Sequence record: OQ383623.1
Length of the DNA stretch: 64,000 bases
Direction: 5' to 3' (one strand)
Positions 3,772-13,667 of the stretch are shown here, piece by piece; within the stretch, counting starts at the first letter, position 1; each line of letters starts with the position of its first letter. Below the pieces are notes generated by a model. That model searched no databases. It was not told where the DNA came from and saw nothing but the letters and a program-made list of their open reading frames with translations. Both the position numbers and the translations under genes were made by a program.

Positions 3772-4130
3772 TACTACTATTGCTGCTTCTATTGGTAGTC
3801 CACGACATATCCCTCGTGGGTGGGTTCGGCGTGTAACCGAATAAGTTTTTCTGTTCCCAGGGCAACGCACCAGGCTTAAGTGATTTAGTTGGCTAACTAG
3901 GAACAGAAAAGGGAGAACAAACCAGGGCGCGAGGTGGCTCTGGATGGATGCGTAAGAAAAACCCAAACGGCCCTGGCCTGTAAGTTGGCCCGAAGTCACC
4001 GTGTCGGAGGACAGCCCATGCAGGTAGGCGGCAATGGACACGGTGACCGCGGAAGTGGTTCGTGTTACCCTTGACCCGTGTGTGGATACGCGTCTTATTT
4101 CGAATGCCTTCGGGATAAGGATAACACAAA
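3772..4130. ncRNA. Candidate structured ncRNA A
   Basis: Consecutive closed domains: 11-bp 3847-3857/3900-3910, 7-bp 3922-3928/3970-3976, 11-bp 3995-4005/4037-4047, and 4062-4072/4117-4127. Confidence 0.55.
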
Positions 4131-4131
4131 T

Positions 4132-4207
4132 TGGCGACTCTGGCAGGATTTGAACCTGCGACATATGGATTAACAGTCCACCGTTCTACCAGCTGAACTA
4201 CAGAGTC
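4132..4207 (-). tRNA. trnN: tRNA-Asn(GTT)
   Basis: 76-nt cloverleaf GACTCTG...CAGAGTC-G-CCA, anticodon loop CTGTTAA, T loop TTCAAAT. Confidence 0.95.
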
Positions 4208-4217
4208 TTAAAGAGCG

Positions 4218-4289
4218 AGCATGTGACGGGATTCGAACCCGCGAAATATCCGATTATGAGTCGGGTGTTAATTCCTCTAACTTCACTGC
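4218..4289 (-). pseudogene. Degenerate tRNA-Met/Ile2(CAT)-like gene
   Basis: Anticodon loop CTCATAA and T arm GCGGG-TTCGAAT-CCCGT are intact; acceptor stem GCAGTG/CACATGC has a bulge, position 8 is A, no encoded CCA. Confidence 0.7.
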
Positions 4290-4292
4290 TCT

Positions 4293-4361
4293 TGCTTTGA
4301 CCGGACTCGAACCGGCGACCTTCCTCGAAGAGGCTGCTCTACCTACCTGAGCTACAAAGCC
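4293..4361 (-). ncRNA. tRNA-shaped RNA with a truncated anticodon arm
   Basis: GGCTTTG-TA-GCTC-AGGTAGGTA-GAGC-A-GCCTC-TTC-GAGGA-AGGTC-GCCGG-TTCGAGT-CCGGT-CAAAGCA: canonical D, variable and T arms, but a 13-nt anticodon arm instead of 17. Confidence 0.75.
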
Positions 4362-4369
4362 ATTGTTCA

Positions 4370-4760
4370 TGGCATCATGATAGTTACATTCAACGTACCA
4401 CACCCCTACTGGTTTCCGTTTCGGGGGACTTAACCAGACACCATACGTCCAAGGTCGACGCTTAGGTGTGTTATCAGTTGCCTGACTGGAAATCTCTTAC
4501 GAGACGTCTACGTTGAACCGGCAAGCCGGCCATGATGTGAAGATGGGGGAACGCCCAGGCTTCCGCCCAGTCGAGTGAGGTACGAATCCTTCACTCCTGT
4601 CATCACTGATGGTGACAGCGCTCCCATTGTAAGGTGCCGGTGCATCCCGGCGTGTGTTAGTGCATTCAGCTCCCTCGGGCTTATCTGCGGCAACACGTTG
4701 CCCGGCGCACCGACATATACCACAGTAACCTCGTAAAGTCACTCTGGTATTGTTCGTTGC
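4370..4760 (-). ncRNA. Candidate structured ncRNA B (about 390 nt)
   Basis: Nested stems 4373-4379/4531-4537 and 4389-4397/4509-4517; minus-strand GCAA, GTAA and CTTG tetraloops; own promoter at 4760-4787. Confidence 0.65.
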
Positions 4761-4787
4761 ATACTACTAAGTTATCACGTAAACGAT
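4760..4787 (-). promoter_or_regulatory. TAC-N15-TATG promoter driving ncRNA B and the tRNA cluster
   Basis: TTTAC-GTGATAACTTAGTAG-TATG, exact 15-nt spacer as in five other copies. Confidence 0.65.
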
Positions 4788-4794
4788 TTCACCA

Positions 4795-5400
4795 CTTCCA
4801 ATAATTAACCTAAATTCATTTCTGAATGCGGATGATGGACTTCTTCTTCTGAGCCCGGCCGTAAGGTCAGGTCTTAGCGTCTCCAAGCACCACCCGCTAT
4901 CACGTACATTCGTGGCGTACCGGCCGTATGAGGTACCGCGCCTACGGTGACACACAGTCACCCTAACACTGGGAACTCAATCCCATTCGGTTATCAGATT
5001 GTGGATTTACAGGCGTAGCGTGGCGGCTTAATGGGCCGGTGCTTGCCTGTCCCCTAGGGACGGTTGTCGTGGAGACGCCAGTCTGTAAGTGGGGCCCTTA
5101 CGGGAAAACCCATCGCCTGTAAACCAAACATGATTGAATACCCAGAACCGGACGTTGGAAATCAACATCCTGATGTACTGGAGTATTTCATGCATAAACG
5201 TGTCTCGTATCGAATGAGGTTATGACCGGTCAGATACCCAGCATCCTGTACAAGCGACCTGGTGCTTTGTGTACCTGGCTGCTACGGATTTATCGGCTTA
5301 CCGTAGGTCTAAGCTACTACCGGCTCATGCGGGACATCAACCCGCACAATCTGAGTAAGTATCACGGCTCGAATAGGGTTAGTGGGCCGAAGCCCACTGT
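4795..5400 (-). ncRNA. Candidate structured ncRNA C (core about 365 nt, 4991-5358)
   Basis: 10-bp closing helix 4994-5003/5345-5354 around multibranch domains (5006-5015/5114-5123; 5150-5157/5163-5170; 5222-5230/5319-5328); C(UUCG)G hairpin at 5381-5398. Confidence 0.65.
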
Positions 5401-5643
5401 TTAGCCAGCGTTGAACGATTCATGAACGACGGTCCCAGCAGGATAGTGCGTAGTACCGATAAGAGTAACGGTCAGGGTAAGCCCTTCATCCCAGCGCTCT
5501 TTCGGTAACCAGCGGCAGTCCATCCAATGACCACAGTCGGGAGGAATTGCACACGCAGCTTGCTCCGTAGGAGCCGCCACGATTATGGAATCAAATTCAT
5601 CATACCCGATATCGTCAGTTCGTTCTAGCAAGTACAAATTCAT
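5401..5643 (-). CDS. Small hypothetical phage protein
   Basis: GGAG SD before ATG 5643 (MNLYLLERTDDIGYDEFDSIIVAA). Confidence 0.7.
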   Translation of the reverse strand: MNLYLLERTDDIGYDEFDSIIVAAPTEQAACAIPPDCGHWMDCRWLPKERWDEGLTLTVTLIGTTHYPAGTVVHESFNAG

Positions 5644-5707
5644 GTTGTTCTCCAACAGTTGACAAATCTGTGTCTTCTGTGTTGAACCTGAATTCGTTGG
5701 CTAAATG

Positions 5708-5783
5708 TGGCGGGGGCACGAGGTTTCGAACCTCGAACCTTCGGTTTTGGAGACCGGTGCGCTACCAATTGCGCCATACCCCC
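5708..5783 (-). tRNA. trnW: tRNA-Trp(CCA)
   Basis: 76-nt cloverleaf GGGGGTA...TGCCCCC-G-CCA, anticodon loop CTCCAAA. Confidence 0.95.
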
Positions 5784-5876
5784 AGAATTCTTTAAACGTG
5801 TTTATACGGATGCGCTACCCCGTTATCGCAGGCGATTGATGGGGTCAAGCTTGCGTGCTTCTGACTCCCGCATGAT

Positions 5877-6368
5877 TCACCTCCGTAGTTCGTAAGTGCT
5901 AATCTCACCACCGGTGTAGATATCGCATTCGGACGCAATCTCAACAGCACGAACCGCATTCGCGCCCATCTTCATCGCACCCAACGCGTACTCGTAACCG
6001 CTTCCGGTTGCCAGAGGTGGTGTGGCTTCACTCCACCACAACGACACGTCGTCTTCACGCTTCCCACCGACTATCGCTTTCCCTGAGGCCAGAAGCATCA
6101 GGAAAGTAAAATCCATCTTCGCAGGTAACTGCGAGCTTTGTGTTAACCCCTTGTAGCCGGGTCTCAAGCGGACCGTTTCCAGCAGGGCCAATTGTCCTGT
6201 GATGTCGCCGCTTACCCCGAACACCACAATTCGTTCACCGGTAATCCACCACTCCTCGTCAGGAGGACAGACGAATAACTTCTGGGTATTCAGGTTGCAG
6301 ATATTCGACCCACGGGTTAACTGGCCGTCAGCAGCTAAGACTTTTCCATCGAACGCTATCGTGGTCAT
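5877..6368 (-). CDS. HslV/proteasome-beta-like Ntn-hydrolase peptidase
   Basis: N-terminal M-T-T-I-A...LAADGQ and GSGYEYALGAM...AVEIA...D.YTGG motifs. Confidence 0.75.
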   Translation of the reverse strand: MTTIAFDGKVLAADGQLTRGSNICNLNTQKLFVCPPDEEWWITGERIVVFGVSGDITGQLALLETVRLRPGYKGLTQSSQLPAKMDFTFLMLLASGKAIVGGKREDDVSLWWSEATPPLATGSGYEYALGAMKMGANAVRAVEIASECDIYTGGEISTYELRR

Positions 6369-6392
6369 GATTTAATTCTCCGTTTGGTTTAT

Positions 6393-6420
6393 CATACCTC
6401 ACGCAGAATCTGTAAATTTT
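6393..6420 (-). promoter_or_regulatory. TAC-N15-TATG promoter
   Basis: AAAATTTAC-AGATTCTGCGTGAGG-TATG upstream of the HslV-like gene. Confidence 0.65.
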
Positions 6421-7005
6421 AATCAGCCAGGTACCGTCGTTTCTCAACGGGAGTACCCACCCCTCTCGTCTGTTCCGAGCCGGCAAGATATGGACCAACC
6501 TCCTCATCGGAGTTATCCCCCAAGTCTGCGGTTCTACACGCAGACCCCTTTTCGACGCAACGCCGAATTCGAATCAGTTTTGGCCCGACGCCAGAGCGGA
6601 ATCAGCGATAACTATCGGAGGTAAGTTCAACGACGTCTCTCCGCTGCCCAGTCCTCTGGCGCTGCCACGGTCAACTCGGATTTTGTCATGGGTGCGCAGT
6701 CGACTTTCTCGACACTCTCGCAAACCGAACTACGCCCGACGTAGCACCGTCGGCAGGTCGGTTATCTACCGAGTACCTGAATGGGTGGTGATTGTCGGAA
6801 TCCCCGCCGACGCTCACCGGTTCTGTTCCACGGCGAAAGTTTTCCAGAACATAATAAATCACGCAGTGTTAGATTGCGCTTTGTCGAAGACACCACGGCA
6901 GGTATTTTCGAAAAAGCGTCCTGGGTAACAATCCCAGGACTTGGAGCCCTAGTGTGCAGGGTTTAAAAAGTGATTGGACCATTGGCGCGGTCAATCGCTA
7001 TTCGC
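6421..7005 (-). ncRNA. Candidate structured ncRNA D (about 585 nt)
   Basis: No credible ORF; more than 10 hairpins, including 6524-6530/6539-6545, 6589-6596/6654-6661 and 6918-6925/6933-6940; promoter at 7005-7032. Confidence 0.6.
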
Positions 7006-7032
7006 ATATAACAACAAACTCACGTAATCAAA
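7005..7032 (-). promoter_or_regulatory. TAC-N15-TATG promoter driving ncRNA D
   Basis: GATTAC-GTGAGTTTGTTGTTA-TATG, exact 15-nt spacer. Confidence 0.6.
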
Positions 7033-7035
7033 AAA

Positions 7036-7240
7036 TTACCGGCTCGAGGCGTAGGCGTCCAGGAGCCGGTGAGTCACACAGCAGTGAGTCCCTCTGCGGG
7101 GATTTTCGTGGAGCTTGTCGTTGAAATAAAAATCCGTCCCTGGACGGGTTGGTGATGTGGGTCGACTTGTCAGAGTCTGCCGTCCAGGGAGGCGGCCACC
7201 GAAGCTATGGGTTTTGGACATCGAGTGGTGGTCTGAACAC
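7036..7240 (-). ncRNA. Candidate structured ncRNA E (about 200 nt)
   Basis: Stems 7038-7045/7063-7070, 7100-7106/7129-7135 and 11-bp 7137-7147/7180-7190; near-consensus promoter TTTTTTAC-N15-TGTG at 7238-7265. Confidence 0.5.
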
Positions 7241-7294
7241 ACGATAGGGAAACCACGTAAAAAATACACAGGGTACCCAAACTAGGACTTCCGT

Positions 7295-7540
7295 CCGATC
7301 ACGATCTCTTAATAAGGATCACGCGCGCGCCTGCACGCGTTTTAAGATCTTAATATAATATATATTATTATATATTAATATATTTATTTATATAAATAAT
7401 TATAATAATTAAATATAATACCTAAAGGTATTATTATATTTAATATTATTATATATTTTAAAAGATCCTGGAGGATACGGGTGTGCGCACGCGCACGCGT
7501 ATAAGGAAAGGGTCTTCGACCCGATCCACAGGATCAATCT
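7295..7540. other. Origin-like element: AT tract, GATC cluster and alternating purine/pyrimidine flanks
   Basis: 7350-7463 has only 4 G/C in 114 bp; 7 GATC sites in 7297-7535; alternating R/Y runs at 7321-7330 and 7481-7503. Confidence 0.5.
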
Positions 7541-8090
7541 AAAAAACAATCTAAGTGATTGTTTTAAAAAGAAATTTTGAGAATTAGATTAAATTATCCC
7601 CTAAGGGGGATTTTAGAGCGAGTTAAACAACCCAAAAGAACTCGTAAGTAACCGACAGTGTGTGTCGGTTACAGAACGATCCAGTTTTCACCCAGACATG
7701 GCACGAAGTGCTACCCAACGTGTGATCGTCGCGGCGACCGGCGACCGTCGTCCCGGAACCGAAACGGGAATGGCTCTCTCGCGCTCTCAGCGGCCCGCTG
7801 GCGCGATTTTCCGGTAGGGGGAACCCAAGTGTACTGGGTTGGGTATAAATCTCGTTCTAGCGCTTTCTAGAGCGTTTTTAATAACTGGTTAAAAAACATA
7901 CAATCCAGAATCCCCATTCCCCGTATTTCCTCGCCCCGACAAAAATAAATTCACCGACTCGATGCAAGACCCCCTCTAAAATGCACGTAACCTGCCCTAG
8001 AAAACGATAAACTATCAAAAATGAGCTACCCTACACCCAGACCACTTAATCGTTTTCTGGTGTTTCCTAGACATCTTTAATCGGATGGTT

Positions 8091-8140
8091 AAAAAAACAA
8101 AAAAAAATAAGATTGGCGTACTCCCCGAAGAGAGTACGCC
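8091..8140 (-). terminator. Intrinsic terminator
   Basis: GGCGTACTC/GAGTACGCC stem with TTCG in the loop and a long T-run. Confidence 0.8.
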
Positions 8141-8147
8141 TAGTGAC

Positions 8148-8657
8148 TTAACACTTGATGGTATAGCCATCAAGGCCAAGGTGTACTGGTTTTATCCATA
8201 ACCCTGGCTCCCCGAAAATATTCAGGTCGTAAGTTTGGTAATGCATGATCTTTGCAGGAACATGCACACCCATGCGTTGCAGAAATTCCCAGACGGCGAC
8301 GTAGCGTTCACGAGTGATGAACATTAATCCGGAGTCGAACCCGGAACCGATGTCTAAGAAATTACCAAGAGAACTGTCAAAACTTGACACGCCGTCTTGA
8401 GTAAGTGCGACCAACCCTTTAGTTAAATCTCTGTGGTTGTCAATGAAGTTACAGAGATCTACGATGGTTATTTGACCGTAAATACGACGGAGGACGGCAG
8501 CAACAGCCAAAATCTCGCTGGTATTTCCGTAGTCACCTAAAGGGTTATGGTCCATCATCGCAGTAATTATGCTTGTGTCGCAGAGGTCGATTAACCGCTG
8601 GTCATGTACCACCAGGTTAAGACCTTGCCCCACCCGCATGGTTGGCGCAGTAAACAT
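8148..8657 (-). CDS. Hypothetical protein (likely start ATG 8657, MFTAPT)
   Basis: AAGGAG SD directly after the stop of the upstream gene. Confidence 0.65.
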   Translation of the reverse strand: MFTAPTMRVGQGLNLVVHDQRLIDLCDTSIITAMMDHNPLGDYGNTSEILAVAAVLRRIYGQITIVDLCNFIDNHRDLTKGLVALTQDGVSSFDSSLGNFLDIGSGFDSGLMFITRERYVAVWEFLQRMGVHVPAKIMHYQTYDLNIFGEPGLWIKPVHLGLDGYTIKC

Positions 8658-8667
8658 AGGAGGCTCC

Positions 8668-9801
8668 TTACGTTTTGACTGACTGTGAAGGTACTCTGGC
8701 ATCGTACATTAAAAAGATTTCCAGCAGACTCATACCCGTCGCGTAAAAGATTTGGTCTGTGATGACACTTACCAACGCTTCTGGGTCTATTGCGTCTACT
8801 GCAAAATCACTGTCGAAATGCCAGAACTCGACGTCATCCCCCTTTTCAAACGTCGCGGCATACAATCCAGGTTTCACACCACGCCGGAACGAAAAGAGTT
8901 TTGCGTCAGACTCAGTGTCCTTACCATAAATTTCCCCGTCGGTCCGCGTAATCGCTGCGCGTTTACACCGAGTTACCGTAAGGAGCGCACGGTTTGCGGA
9001 TGCTTGCGATTTAAACGGATAGGGGCCATCGTATGTCGGGACATTCTGGTCGCCTAAGGCATCAAGTGCCTTACTCCGATAGACTACCGGAGACTTAAAA
9101 TTACACAGTCGATTCCCTTCGGTAAACATTGTGTATTCGACCTTAACGTCGGTACCGACGAGGTCAGCAGGGGACACTTTGTAGTGTGCTAACTGTCCCT
9201 GCACGCGGCGAGAGAGCATCGATGCCAGGAAGGTATGGTTGCCCTGTGTACGCAAGACATAACCGAACTCTGTGCAGTCGATGATACGAGCGTCCATACG
9301 TCGTACAGGCTCCAGCCGGTAAGTCACATCGTTAGCTTCGATAAGAAACTGACTGATGCTAAAATCGCGAGATCGATGTTTGATTGCTTCAAACACCTCA
9401 CCCGCTTCCAGAATAGCCGGTTCAATCACATTGACCTGGAATGGGAGCGGTTTCGTCGGTCGTTGACCCATTGTTGTCACTGTCATCGAACGTAGCCACG
9501 GGTCGTCCTCGCTAGGGTCATTGGAAAGCCAATGCGTTAACCAGCGAGAAAGGTTCTGGGGAATCGTTGCGGTTGAATATAAAATCACGGTACCCATTAT
9601 GCCTGCATCGGCTAGCAAGCGTGCGAGTACCGTGTTCATCGAATCGTATTTGCCATTTCGAAGAATAGGTAATCCTCCGACCTGGACCATTTCGCAGATG
9701 ACGCCGTGTGGCAACACCCACATCTTCACTTGTTGGGCAGAATGTATCTGCCCAGTGCGCAGCTTTTCTTGCCACGCGTGCTTACGTTCAAAGTTCATCA
9801 T
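8668..9801 (-). CDS. ATP-dependent DNA-ligase-fold protein, apparently catalytically degenerate
   Basis: By-eye collinearity with ligase motifs: LPHG (KxDG position), ILRNGK, YRLEPVRRMDARII (motif V), and OB-fold LVGTDVKVEY...FKSPVVYR. Confidence 0.45.
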   Translation of the reverse strand: MMNFERKHAWQEKLRTGQIHSAQQVKMWVLPHGVICEMVQVGGLPILRNGKYDSMNTVLARLLADAGIMGTVILYSTATIPQNLSRWLTHWLSNDPSEDDPWLRSMTVTTMGQRPTKPLPFQVNVIEPAILEAGEVFEAIKHRSRDFSISQFLIEANDVTYRLEPVRRMDARIIDCTEFGYVLRTQGNHTFLASMLSRRVQGQLAHYKVSPADLVGTDVKVEYTMFTEGNRLCNFKSPVVYRSKALDALGDQNVPTYDGPYPFKSQASANRALLTVTRCKRAAITRTDGEIYGKDTESDAKLFSFRRGVKPGLYAATFEKGDDVEFWHFDSDFAVDAIDPEALVSVITDQIFYATGMSLLEIFLMYDARVPSQSVKT

Positions 9802-11316: not shown

Positions 11317-11559
11317 TCAGGCGAGTGCTCCCGATACGGCAACTTGATGTAGGGTATACACAACGTGTAGCCCCGCGGTAGATAGTCCACCGATAAGCAA
11401 TGCGCCAAAGCTACAGATAATCTGTCCGAGCCGCATTGTGCGTGTGCAGACATCGTGACTTTGTGCGTGTATGCGTATTACTTCGATGGTGTGGCGTAAG
11501 CCAAAGTATAGGCAAATCCACATTACCAGCACGATTGCATAGTAGAGTTGAGTCATCAC
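11317..11559 (-). CDS. Small membrane protein (two hydrophobic segments)
   Basis: LYYAIVLVMWICLYFGL and IICSFGALLIGGLSTAGLHVVY; start overlaps the terminase stop (ATGA). Confidence 0.6.
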   Translation of the reverse strand: MMTQLYYAIVLVMWICLYFGLRHTIEVIRIHAQSHDVCTRTMRLGQIICSFGALLIGGLSTAGLHVVYTLHQVAVSGALA

Positions 11560-13667
11560 TTCATCCTCTGTCGTTGGATTAGCTCTTTCAAGCTTTCCAT
11601 CGATGCGACGTTACGAACGTCAGTGTTGAGTTGAGAGACGAGCGCTTGAATACGATTCTTGTACATGAGCTGTTGTACCGGGTCGGCCACAACTTGACTC
11701 TGTCTAATCATCGTTTCAATTTGCCCCATCAGTTGTTGTTGCTTTTCTTCTTCCTCGACTGCAGCCTCTTCATCGAATTCACCTGCCATGCCCCCGAGCA
11801 TATTGCGGTTGCGCATCATCAGTCGGCTGTTACTTATACCGTAGTGGCCTAAGTTGTTGCCGAACAGAAGTAACCACATTGCCAGAAGCCAGGATATTAC
11901 CAGGTCATCGTGACCGGATGCACGGTGGTCTATGCGCCCGTTTCGTTCGACGAGACCGAGGATTTGGTCGATCAATTCGCCTGACCGCAGTAAGTCCGCA
12001 GAAAGACGCAACGCCGTGGTAAATACTTCACCATACAACTTACGGCGTTTATCCTGGTCGGTTGAGAAACCGATGTATTTACGGAATTTGTCCCAGAAGC
12101 GCTCTGGACTGCCCACAGGGCCACGATGGAACTCTTTGTAAAGTTCATCGTTCCTTGAGTAATCCTGGGTCACTTTCACGTACAAACGACGATGCAAATC
12201 GCGAACCTTAGATTGCAGCTGCAGTATGATGGCATCTGCTACCGAGGAGCCGGTAGACCGTCGTTCCAGAATGAGTACCGTGTTCGGATATTCGATCATG
12301 AAGTCTGCTAAGTGAATCGCAAACCCGATGACGTTTGTTTCGTTCACGGTGAGCTTGCCGGCATATTCGGCAGTGACAGAGTTGACGATTGACATGGCAA
12401 TGGCGTCACGTCCAACGGCTTCGGAAGTATCCAAACCGATGATGTGGCGGTCTTGCATTTTAACCAGCATCTGTTCTTCGGTGTAATACCAATCCGTTAC
12501 GTAGTTGGAAGCAGAGATAATTTTCTGCGCTGCCCGAATACGCGAGGCGTTCATACGTCTTGCATCATCGCCTGAGAACGGTTTGTTGTAACCACCGGTT
12601 GTCCATTCACCACCGAAGTCGCGGCGGATCTGGTCTGGTGTACCTGGGGCGTTCGCAATCATATCTGCGAGTTCTTCGTCCGTGGTACCGAGCTGGCGGT
12701 GGTTGTATTTCACGTAGAACATGATACGTGGAATCTTCGCAGTAGAGCCTTTGCGAATCATGTCAATCAGTTGTGCACGAGTCGGAATGTCGATATACCG
12801 TTCATCCCACGAAATCCCCGACGTCATCAGGCTGTACATGTACTCGCCTTCTTCTGTCGCCAAATCCCCAGGCGTTGTTGCGAAGACGTTGCCGTATGGA
12901 ACACCTTCGGCTTCGTTAATACGACGCGCCGCGGTACCCGATGCTAGTGCAGCAGGGAGGATATGGTGGATGTTGTTGGTAAACGGCCCTTCATCCGAGA
13001 ACAGGCGTCCGGCTGTGAGTCCACGGCCTACCCCGTTCGCAGCTTCCTTATCGTTTTGACCGATGCCGGTGATAAGTTTGTTACCCTGCGCTAGACATGC
13101 AAATGTCTCACGGTTATCAGGATCGTCCGGGTGATGAGGCCAGAGGTAATCCGGTAACGCGTTACGCAGTTGCTTCATCTTGTTAATAGTTTCTTCACGC
13201 AGGGCAGGACCCTTCGTGATAAGAATCGTGCGTGAGTTCTCCAGGAAGCGCATCAGCCACAAAAGCAATGCGGACATCCCGACAGTTTTACCATGCTGAC
13301 GGAGAAACTCGATAGCGGCGTCGATGTTGTTGAAGAAAATCCAATACATCGAAAAGTTACCGCGGTCTAGACGAAACGGCATCCCGTTCTTTACACCATC
13401 CGCAGGGACGCGGACACATTCACGGAAGAAGTACCATGGGTTTTCCGCACACTCCGTAACAATCATCGCTTTTTGTTCGAGTGTTAAATCCGGACTGAAT
13501 GGATCAACACCACGGAGTTCAGGATTGTGTAATGCCAGGTGGACGTACCAGTGCTGGACACCTAATCCTTGTAATGTTGTGGCGAATTGAAGGAAGTGCA
13601 CGTTTGGTGTGACATCGTCAACAATCGCCCCCGGATAGTGTCGCCAATCGTTTTTTCGCAGTATCAT
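11556..13667 (-). CDS. terL: Terminase large subunit
   Basis: Walker A RQHGKT, Walker B LFSDEG, nuclease IIGLDTS and HDDLVISW; phiKZ gp25-like. Confidence 0.92.
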   Translation of the reverse strand: MILRKNDWRHYPGAIVDDVTPNVHFLQFATTLQGLGVQHWYVHLALHNPELRGVDPFSPDLTLEQKAMIVTECAENPWYFFRECVRVPADGVKNGMPFRLDRGNFSMYWIFFNNIDAAIEFLRQHGKTVGMSALLLWLMRFLENSRTILITKGPALREETINKMKQLRNALPDYLWPHHPDDPDNRETFACLAQGNKLITGIGQNDKEAANGVGRGLTAGRLFSDEGPFTNNIHHILPAALASGTAARRINEAEGVPYGNVFATTPGDLATEEGEYMYSLMTSGISWDERYIDIPTRAQLIDMIRKGSTAKIPRIMFYVKYNHRQLGTTDEELADMIANAPGTPDQIRRDFGGEWTTGGYNKPFSGDDARRMNASRIRAAQKIISASNYVTDWYYTEEQMLVKMQDRHIIGLDTSEAVGRDAIAMSIVNSVTAEYAGKLTVNETNVIGFAIHLADFMIEYPNTVLILERRSTGSSVADAIILQLQSKVRDLHRRLYVKVTQDYSRNDELYKEFHRGPVGSPERFWDKFRKYIGFSTDQDKRRKLYGEVFTTALRLSADLLRSGELIDQILGLVERNGRIDHRASGHDDLVISWLLAMWLLLFGNNLGHYGISNSRLMMRNRNMLGGMAGEFDEEAAVEEEEKQQQLMGQIETMIRQSQVVADPVQQLMYKNRIQALVSQLNTDVRNVASMESLKELIQRQRMK

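Follow-up and report, generated by a model that had tools for sequence, protein, structure and literature searches.

A putative large structured RNA gene conserved in SPN3US-like jumbo phages

The stretch of DNA analysed here, 64,000 nucleotides (nt) from sequence record OQ383623.1 (hereafter the window; positions without another source are counted from its first letter), carries on its minus strand, from 7005 to about 6412, what is very probably a real structured RNA gene. Comparison of related genomes suggests, as the best reading, that this gene represents a new family of large structured phage RNA confined to the SPN3US-like jumbo phages of Enterobacterales; with somewhat less assurance, we favour the view that its product is a stand-alone, trans-acting structured non-coding RNA (ncRNA) of ~590 nt. 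The region is 100% identical to that of Salmonella phage MET_P1_082_240 and 99% identical to that of SPN3US, both jumbo phages of ~240 kb, the window being SPN3US-like and of the genus Seoulvirus. A phage nucleus is formed by SPN3US and its relative Asesino (review PMC13282480). A first-pass annotation, made from the letters of the window, had already proposed a large ncRNA at this place, about 585 nt in length and encoded by the minus strand. This proposal is borne out by the conserved synteny, the promoter-like motif, the helix order shared in six lineages and the covariation described below. The six lineages are Seoulvirus, Erskinevirus, two Machinavirus groups, Wellingtonvirus and a 222-kb E. 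coli 'plasmid'.

Covariation, extent and architecture of the RNA

The helices (H1 to H14 from 5' to 3') were evaluated by the compensatory changes among the lineages. In a MAFFT alignment of the 3' 260 nt from 17 sequences, 91.8% of the cells were paired, in comparison to 35-45% when the pairing partners were slid by 1-3 columns. Moreover, 24 of the 50 pairs were compensatory, the covariation on which the first-pass annotation had made its proposal depend, whereas only 5-7 were so after sliding; the covariation score was 0.370 versus 0.065-0.096, and the observed values were reached by none of 500 shuffles. When the last 125 nt were examined in a model-based alignment of 19 sequences from five lineages (the covariance model built in this study covers only this part of the RNA), 95.4% of the cells were paired and compensatory changes were found in 17 of the 32 pairs, against 1-8 in the controls. 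As to single helices, H4 was 92.7% paired in a MAFFT alignment of 18 sequences from five lineages, with 5 of its 13 pairs compensatory (0-3 after sliding), and compensatory pairs made up 4 of 8 in H7, 5 of 7 in H8, 6 of 7 in H10 (model-based alignment) and 9 of 14 in H14, which was 97.5% paired and contains one invariant G-U. One pair of the H7 domain (22-125) occurred as C-G in nine sequences, as U-A in seven and as U-G in one. Because MAFFT failed to align H6 across lineages, this helix was tested by duplex energy: its strands differ among lineages yet remain complementary, and the mean duplex energy was -12.3 kcal/mol for strands of the same lineage versus -8.2 kcal/mol for cross-lineage combinations. 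In addition, reading of the minus strand gives several invariant G-U pairs (e.g., in 17/17 and 15/17 sequences). Read from the plus strand, each of them would turn into an A-C mismatch, and therefore the sense strand is the minus strand; the earlier description of the G-U evidence as mixed does not stand.

The RNA lies in a 1.8-kb gap (6369-8147) that contains no open reading frame (ORF) of at least 100 aa, as the first-pass annotation had stated for its block, and that is unannotated in the identical GenBank record. The gap is bordered by an HslV-like peptidase gene (5877-6368, minus strand), past which a tRNA-Trp gene (5708-5783) is located ~630 nt downstream of the RNA, and on the other side by a clade-specific 184-aa gene of phrog_9731 (8148-8702, minus strand). 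The position of the RNA between the 184-aa gene and the HslV-like/tRNA cluster is conserved. Its extent (6412-7005, minus strand) was drawn from the flanking promoter-like motifs and from the reach of the cross-lineage conservation. The upstream motif (7005-7035, minus strand) consists of a T-run reaching up to 7035, GATTAC, 15 nt and TATG; its TTAC-N15-TATG part at 7027-7005 is the promoter predicted by the first-pass annotation and is conserved in most lineages. Across the window this pattern occurs 11 times (expected number, 3.9 ± 2.0), each time on the minus strand, and no sigma-70-like site was found in 6369-7300. Upstream of the RNA in the Seoulvirus, Erskinevirus and Machinavirus lineages the motif takes the form TTAC-N15-T(A/G)TG, often preceded by a T-run, and sits 236-560 nt 5' of the core motif; in Wellingtonvirus it has a 17-nt spacer. 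The late promoters of phiKZ are characterised by T(-3)ATG(+1) and an AT-rich element near -24 (PMC7598289). Since the motif fits this pattern, we infer that the RNA starts at G7005, the G of TATG. The 3' end would lie between GCUGA (6423) and the next promoter-like motif, which gives the RNA a length of 583-594 nt in the window. This second TTAC-N15-TATG motif (6393-6415, minus strand) is situated outside the RNA, between it and the HslV-like gene and 25 nt before that gene; it was found in many lineages and is absent where an ORF with its ribosome-binding site directly adjoins.

At the 5' end, hairpin H1 (6996-6972) is followed by U5 (6969-6965), the two forming a terminator- or attenuator-like module (6965-6996, minus strand) that corresponds to the first hairpin and T5 run of the first-pass annotation. 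A hairpin with a U-run is kept at the H1 site in Seoulvirus relatives. The small hairpin H2 (6947-6961, minus strand) occurs only in Seoulvirus and Erskinevirus. The GC-rich hairpin H3 (6918-6940, minus strand) is built of GTCCTGGG/CCCAGGAC, a pairing already proposed, and abuts the invariant CUUUUUCGA; it was flagged as terminator-like and, together with its U-run, makes up the second hairpin-U5 module (6940-6911). A GC-rich hairpin of differing sequence occupies the H3 position in every lineage, and terminator-like modules are conserved in kind across all lineages. The 5' hairpins vary, and the sequence 5' of H3 (20 to 340 nt) is not conserved between lineages. The invariant CUUUUUCGA (6916-6908) is the 5' strand of the long hairpin H4 (6878-6917, minus strand), and its U-run pairs only once H4 has been transcribed.

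H4 is followed by a conserved joining region (6847-6876, minus strand) with the blocks (C)CUAACAC (6876-6866) and UUAUUAUGUUC (6858-6847), which are conserved and without predicted pairing; in the order shared by the lineages, an unpaired conserved block, (G)CCUAACAC, stands between H4 and UUCAGGU. The H5 insert (6783-6845, minus strand) is found only in Seoulvirus and Erskinevirus. It contains the CCACCC that the first-pass annotation had paired with a distant GGGTGG, and we abandoned this long-range helix: one side falls in the lineage-restricted insert, the GGGUGG is mostly used by the covarying H14, and neither side varies. In H6 (6669-6781, minus strand), the conserved UUCAGGU plus the 5' strand (6781-6769) are paired with the 3' strand (6679-6669), enclosing a variable insert of ~15-90 nt.

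The H7 domain (6578-6668, minus strand) is formed by GG(C/U) with (G/A)CC and then by GCGCCAGAG with CUCUGGCGU, and it encloses the hairpin H8 (6634-6614, minus strand), whose loop AACUUAC is nearly invariant. The helix CGCCAGAG/CTCTGGCG named in the first-pass annotation is H7 (6662-6654 with 6596-6588) and is backed by covariation. Hairpin H9 (6551-6567, minus strand; 95.7% paired, one compensatory pair) precedes H10 (6524-6545, minus strand), the GUCUGCG/CGCAGAC hairpin, likewise among the helices first proposed, with a conserved 8-nt loop. H12/H11 (6490-6523, minus strand; ~91% paired) is a small hairpin (6512-6500) within a 3-bp outer helix. Then come the nearly invariant core of 28-30 nt (6460-6489, minus strand), which includes hairpin H13 (6479-6465), the 14-bp hairpin H14 with its GNRA tetraloop (6425-6462, minus strand), and a 3' tail (6412-6427, minus strand) of invariant GCUG(A) and an A/U-rich stretch. 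The strand UCUUGGCGG is invariant as well. The order H3, H4, H6, H7/H8, H9, H10, H11/12, H13, H14 is common to up to six lineages, except that Wellingtonvirus lacks H9 and that both Wellingtonvirus and the E. coli 'plasmid' copy carry a replacement for H10.

Several other pairings were considered. Two helices proposed by RNAalifold were rejected, since the pairing of the 5' UAUGC with an H10 strand clashes with the covarying H10 and that of CCGU with the core GCGG clashes with the covarying H6; an earlier RNAalifold proposal, a GCCAA/UUGGC closing helix, competes with the covarying helix of GG(C/U) with (G/A)CC. A tetraloop-receptor reading of CCUAA/UAUG was dropped because it does not hold in every lineage. 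When the rest of the window was searched for sequences that the conserved loops might target, only chance numbers were obtained.

Distribution of the RNA and its natural variants

Each genome carries one copy of the RNA. Most lineages have a form of 549-602 nt; that of one Machinavirus group is shorter (415 nt) and that of Wellingtonvirus longer (725-752 nt). According to BLASTN, 59 phage records match the RNA, while 63 match the phrog_9731 protein, and as far as BLAST shows the phages bearing the RNA are those with this neighbouring protein. Seoulvirus genomes match over the whole block, with identities as low as 71-74% (SPAsTU and pEa_SNUABM_29). For Erskinevirus, Machinavirus and Wellingtonvirus the match was limited to the 3' part, and its alignment exposed the near-identical 28-nt stretch of the core. 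In lineages whose neighbour protein is 52-57% identical, the core is identical save for a few single-base differences, among them a one-base insertion in the H13 loop of the window and a G/A change in that loop; three changes are present in the E. coli 'plasmid' copy and two in SPLA1a. The SPLA1a core (locus L147, ~2020-2035) reads TTGACTGC where TTGCCGGC or TTGGCGGC is found elsewhere, and no compensating change was found there.

Exact-pattern scans for the 28-nt core retrieved 12 IMG/VR loci and 6 metagenome loci, all of them jumbo-phage contigs of the SPN3US-like clade. The 33 exact-pattern matches in bacterial genomes lacked the flanking motif, and with the covariance model the bacterial matches searched scored at most 19.5 bits, in comparison to 92-129 bits for the phage copies. 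When all complete E. coli genomes were searched, the only match was in a 'plasmid' of strain 98232, and none was in a chromosome. A bacterial or host origin of the RNA was rejected on these pattern-match scores and the lack of matches in E. coli chromosomes. The 'plasmid' record (locus L148; NZ_CP173450.1, p98232-contig_4, circular, 221,873 bp, from a urine isolate) has the gene order of the phages, namely the 377-aa protein, an A+T block, the RNA, the HslV-like gene and the tRNA; the identities are 58% for the 377-aa protein and 34% for the HslV-like protein, and the RNA copy of this record scores 77 bits. Most likely it is the genome of a related jumbo phage, carried by or co-purified with the strain, and we count it as the sixth lineage because of the shared gene order and the divergent RNA copy. 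Its core retains 84% identity over 77 nt where the HslV-like protein has 34%, a comparison indicating that the RNA gene is under strong purifying selection. A search of IMG/VR anchored on HslV gave 80 loci, almost all from unrelated 40-kb phages, and its jumbo contigs L009 and L023 had no match to the RNA.

The gene downstream of the RNA varies, being the HslV-like gene in the window, a 191-aa ORF in Lh1B and SPFM4, a 129-aa ORF in SPAsTU and phrog_20200 in Machinavirus and Wellingtonvirus; the position directly after the RNA is a hot spot, occupied by various small genes. The 191-aa ORF stands between the RNA and the HslV-like gene in many Seoulviruses (Lh1B, SPFM4, SPLA1a and others; 3066-3641 in L002, 2134-2709 in L146 and 2136-2711 in L147) and is absent from the window, SPN3US, SaP7, SPLA3 and SEGD1; no family match to it was found in Pfam, PHROGs or NCBIfam.

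Alternative explanations and a possible mode of action

We found no description of this RNA in a literature search. Rfam at the gathering score identified only tRNAs in this region of the window, and at E ≤ 10 no family matched the RNA in 4000-8300 of the window or in nine relatives; RNase P RNA, tmRNA, 6S RNA, SRP RNA and other housekeeping RNAs had no match in Rfam or ARAGORN. Protein coding was also rejected, as the stop-free frames differ in strand and frame among lineages and no ORF is shared; substitutions have no 3-base periodicity, and insertions and deletions are frequent. The 137-aa coding sequence annotated over the RNA in Huxley is interrupted by a stop in that frame in L144 (92-96% identical), and no coding sequence is annotated at this position in any of the GenBank relatives retrieved. 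A likeness of 8-9-mers to 16S/23S rRNA was within chance by our own arithmetic and was dropped.

The RNA might instead be a cis-acting leader or attenuator, i.e., a long 5' untranslated region of the downstream gene (HslV-like and tRNA-Trp here) that controls read-through or translation. We consider this unlikely, and the long HslV/tRNA-Trp leader, which the first-pass annotation had offered beside the ncRNA, has lost ground. The hairpins followed by U5 at 6996-6965 and 6940-6911 and the lack of a terminator at the 3' end of the RNA would suit a leader, as would the several lineages in which an ORF with a ribosome-binding site begins within ~30 nt, with no promoter-like motif in between. Moreover, related jumbo phages are documented to terminate transcripts prematurely just past start sites (PMC11512511). 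However, the downstream gene is inconstant while the core of the RNA is nearly invariant, and this difference between lineages argues against a dedicated leader. In the window, as in many relatives, a promoter-like motif (here at 6415-6393, before the HslV-like gene) stands between the RNA and the gene that follows; we found no competing antiterminator pairing, nor any other by which a terminator or a ribosome-binding site might be switched, and the length and conserved unpaired blocks go far beyond known leaders.

It is still less probable that the locus is a row of separate elements, with short RNAs ending at the hairpin-U5 modules and an independent 3' element of ~250 nt arising by processing or from an unrecognised promoter. 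The absence of a long-range helix joining the 5' and 3' parts, the conservation in kind of the terminator-like modules in all lineages and the unconserved sequence of 20 to 340 nt 5' of H3 speak for such an arrangement. However, the interval from H3 to the core is free of promoter-like motifs in every lineage, the 3' domain is invariably accompanied by H3-H4 in the same order, and the invariant U-run doubles as the 5' strand of the covarying H4.

An element acting at the level of DNA (replication origin, packaging site or homing-endonuclease target) appears very improbable. Its proponents could point to the conserved 120-bp A+T-only block with CG clamps 300 nt away, to the terminase gene ~4.5 kb away, to the many GenBank records that begin at the RNA locus and to the HNH gene inserted beside the invariant core, whereas the compensatory changes preserve helices, many of the G-U pairs would be A-C on the other strand, and promoter-like motifs of the same orientation lie on both flanks. 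A mobile self-splicing intron or its remnant is scarcely credible, for although an HNH ORF lies within the H11 loop in Kwan and the RNA has a GNRA tetraloop and multi-helix junctions, no group I (RF00028) or group II model matched even at E ≤ 10, no split ORF, interrupted gene or tRNA flanks the RNA, which has its own promoter-like motif, the ORF occurs in one sub-lineage only, and the 3' hairpin H14, whose internal-loop bases are not conserved, lacks, on our reading of the alignment, the conserved 2-nt bulge and catalytic triad of group II domain V.

Several observations weigh against a stand-alone RNA gene of this extent. Folding of the single sequence 7005-6423 gave z = -2.8 for the minus and -2.5 for the plus strand (100 dinucleotide shuffles); for a 667-nt span the values were -4.7 and -3.7, respectively (20 shuffles). 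Single-sequence folding is thus modestly better than chance and alone no proof of an RNA, and the case rests on the comparison of genomes. There the sequences fall into only six lineages with an effective sequence number of 1.56, so that the independent changes are far fewer than the cell counts imply. Both ends of the RNA rest on inference. The two hairpin-U5 modules could halt most transcripts within 100 nt, no helix linking the 5' part to the 3' part was found, and no canonical terminator was found at the 3' end in the window. The motif 3' of the RNA is missing in SPAsTU, pEa_SNUABM_29, pEa_SNUABM_9, pEa_SNUABM_10, Huxley and the metagenomic locus L141, in which, where checked, an ORF with a ribosome-binding site begins ~25-30 nt past the RNA. 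Furthermore, pEa_SNUABM_6 (L094 2304-2580) lacks H7, H8, H9 and the first half of H10 through a ~140-nt deletion, and in Kwan and Wellington a ~640-nt insertion with an HNH gene occupies the H11 loop, beside the invariant core. Since such deletion and insertion variants exist in nature, the RNA appears to be dispensable for laboratory growth and not essential for plaque formation. The mode of action outlined below is proposed by analogy.

The pEa_SNUABM_6 deletion looks as if it arose between two short similar stretches, and this genome is a candidate for either a natural knock-out or an assembly error. The HNH endonuclease gene of Kwan (gp291) has its own terminator-like hairpin (L093 1700-2570; Wellington alike), and the insertion fits homing into a conserved target, most simply by a free-standing homing endonuclease in a tolerant loop. 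Judging from these genomes, the RNA seems to tolerate large insertions in peripheral loops and to be independent of its downstream neighbour. A sub-threshold match to int-alpA RNA (31 bits, cutoff 35.8) was noted at 1875-1940 of the Kwan locus.

Under the reading that we prefer, a stand-alone RNA, the phage's own RNA polymerase would, by analogy with phiKZ, transcribe the gene from the TTAC-N15-TATG motif with +1 at G7005. It would have to pass one or two hairpin-U5 modules, at which part of the transcripts may terminate; such early termination has been described for 201phi2-1 and phiKZ (PMC11512511). As attenuators, the modules would determine how much short RNA is made relative to the full-length product. 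The latter would fold into a tertiary structure and act in trans; a site for the binding of a protein or RNA partner or for catalysis may be provided by the invariant core in its 3' part together with the GNRA hairpin and the conserved loops, and the variable peripheral helices may be tolerated decorations. Any particular activity assigned to the RNA is doubtful. Only tentatively can one think of a new large-RNA class, catalytic or self-assembling, that is particular to the jumbo phages which form a nucleus; it might, for instance, be a ribozyme, or else an assembly of RNA alone or of RNA and protein, working inside the phage nucleus or around it, with the 28-nt core and the GNRA hairpin as its active or assembly centre.

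Flanking features and comparison with known large RNAs

The other parts of the gap and its surroundings contain further elements. At 7341-7466, within a block spanning 7295-7514, ~120 bp consist of A+T only and form many overlapping palindromes; this stretch is bounded by GATC sites and the CG-rich clamps CGCGCGCG and GCGCACGCGCACGCG, is kept in all six lineages, and could serve as a DNA-unwinding or origin element or have a role in packaging. In the window it lies 300 nt from the RNA, and the gene for the large terminase subunit (11556-13667) is ~4.5 kb from the RNA. Between this A+T block and the RNA there is a further promoter-like motif (7260-7238) with two terminator-like hairpins downstream of it, one at 7147-7134 with a U-run and another at 7069-7039 with U6, the T-run of the latter doubling as part of the promoter of the RNA gene; this suggests one or two more small RNAs of 100-200 nt in 7030-7260. 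A short block at 7846-7813 (27-30 nt) is conserved in Machinavirus, and a strong terminator hairpin after the 184-aa gene (8140-8115, in the block 8101-8142) is kept in Seoulvirus and Asesino. The neighbouring proteins of 184 aa, 377 aa and 458 aa had no sequence match in Pfam, NCBIfam or PDB; for the 377-aa protein (8668-9801) the name 'putative DNA ligase' in some records is unsupported here, and phrog_8136, the PHROG family to which it belongs, has no assigned function. Downstream of tRNA-Trp, a second ORF-poor block (4210-5400) contains tRNA-like sequences at 4218-4289 (31.9 bits) and 4292-4361 (39.9 bits), which were recognised by Rfam and not by ARAGORN, as well as two promoter-like motifs (4782-4760 and 4736-4714). 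The locus resembles an RNA-gene island.

To our knowledge, structured RNAs longer than ~400 nt without a known function are rare in bacteria and phages. RNase P, the group I and II introns, OLE, GOLLD and ROOL have proved to be ribozymes, ribonucleoproteins or RNA cages. The RNA family described here resides in genetically tractable jumbo phages that infect Salmonella, E. coli or Erwinia. At least some of these phages construct a nucleus-like compartment, and a large RNA in such phages raises direct questions on its localisation and binding. The pEa_SNUABM_6 deletion and the Kwan/Wellington insertion provide natural test material, and the 28-nt core is a simple marker of the clade, which exposed the E. 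coli 'plasmid' record as most likely a phage genome.

Among the known large RNAs, ROOL (RF03087) is similar in its ~580 nt, its location in phages and prophages beside tRNA genes, and its many helices with conserved unpaired nucleotides (background drawn in part from the preprint 10.1101/2024.12.08.627333). The likeness to ROOL suggested by the first-pass annotation holds for location and length (tRNA-Trp ~630 nt downstream; 583-594 nt here) and fails for family membership: its covariance model did not match the jumbo-phage RNA even at E ≤ 10 in the window and the nine relatives. Moreover, the latter has other hosts and another type of phage and carries a promoter-proximal pair of hairpin-U5 modules. 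The comparison with ROOL is therefore an analogy only, because there is no Rfam match. GOLLD (RF01998) is also large, ornate, phage-associated and near tRNA genes, with variable peripheral domains; however, its model did not match, it is ~800 nt long and has another architecture, and a multimeric cage has been shown for GOLLD. OLE has ~600 nt, highly conserved unpaired blocks and is thought to be a ribonucleoprotein, but it is chromosomal in anaerobic Firmicutes with known protein partners, and its model found no match here. Group I introns with a homing-endonuclease ORF in a peripheral loop are called to mind by the HNH ORF in an RNA loop of Kwan and Wellington, whereas the jumbo-phage RNA has no exons and no intron-model match and has its own promoter-like motif. 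The short RNAs of phiKZ and 201phi2-1 (PMC11512511) resemble it in a jumbo-phage start site followed almost at once by a hairpin-U terminator. However, these RNAs are shorter than 250 nt, whereas in the RNA described here covarying structure runs on for ~500 nt past the first terminator-like hairpin.

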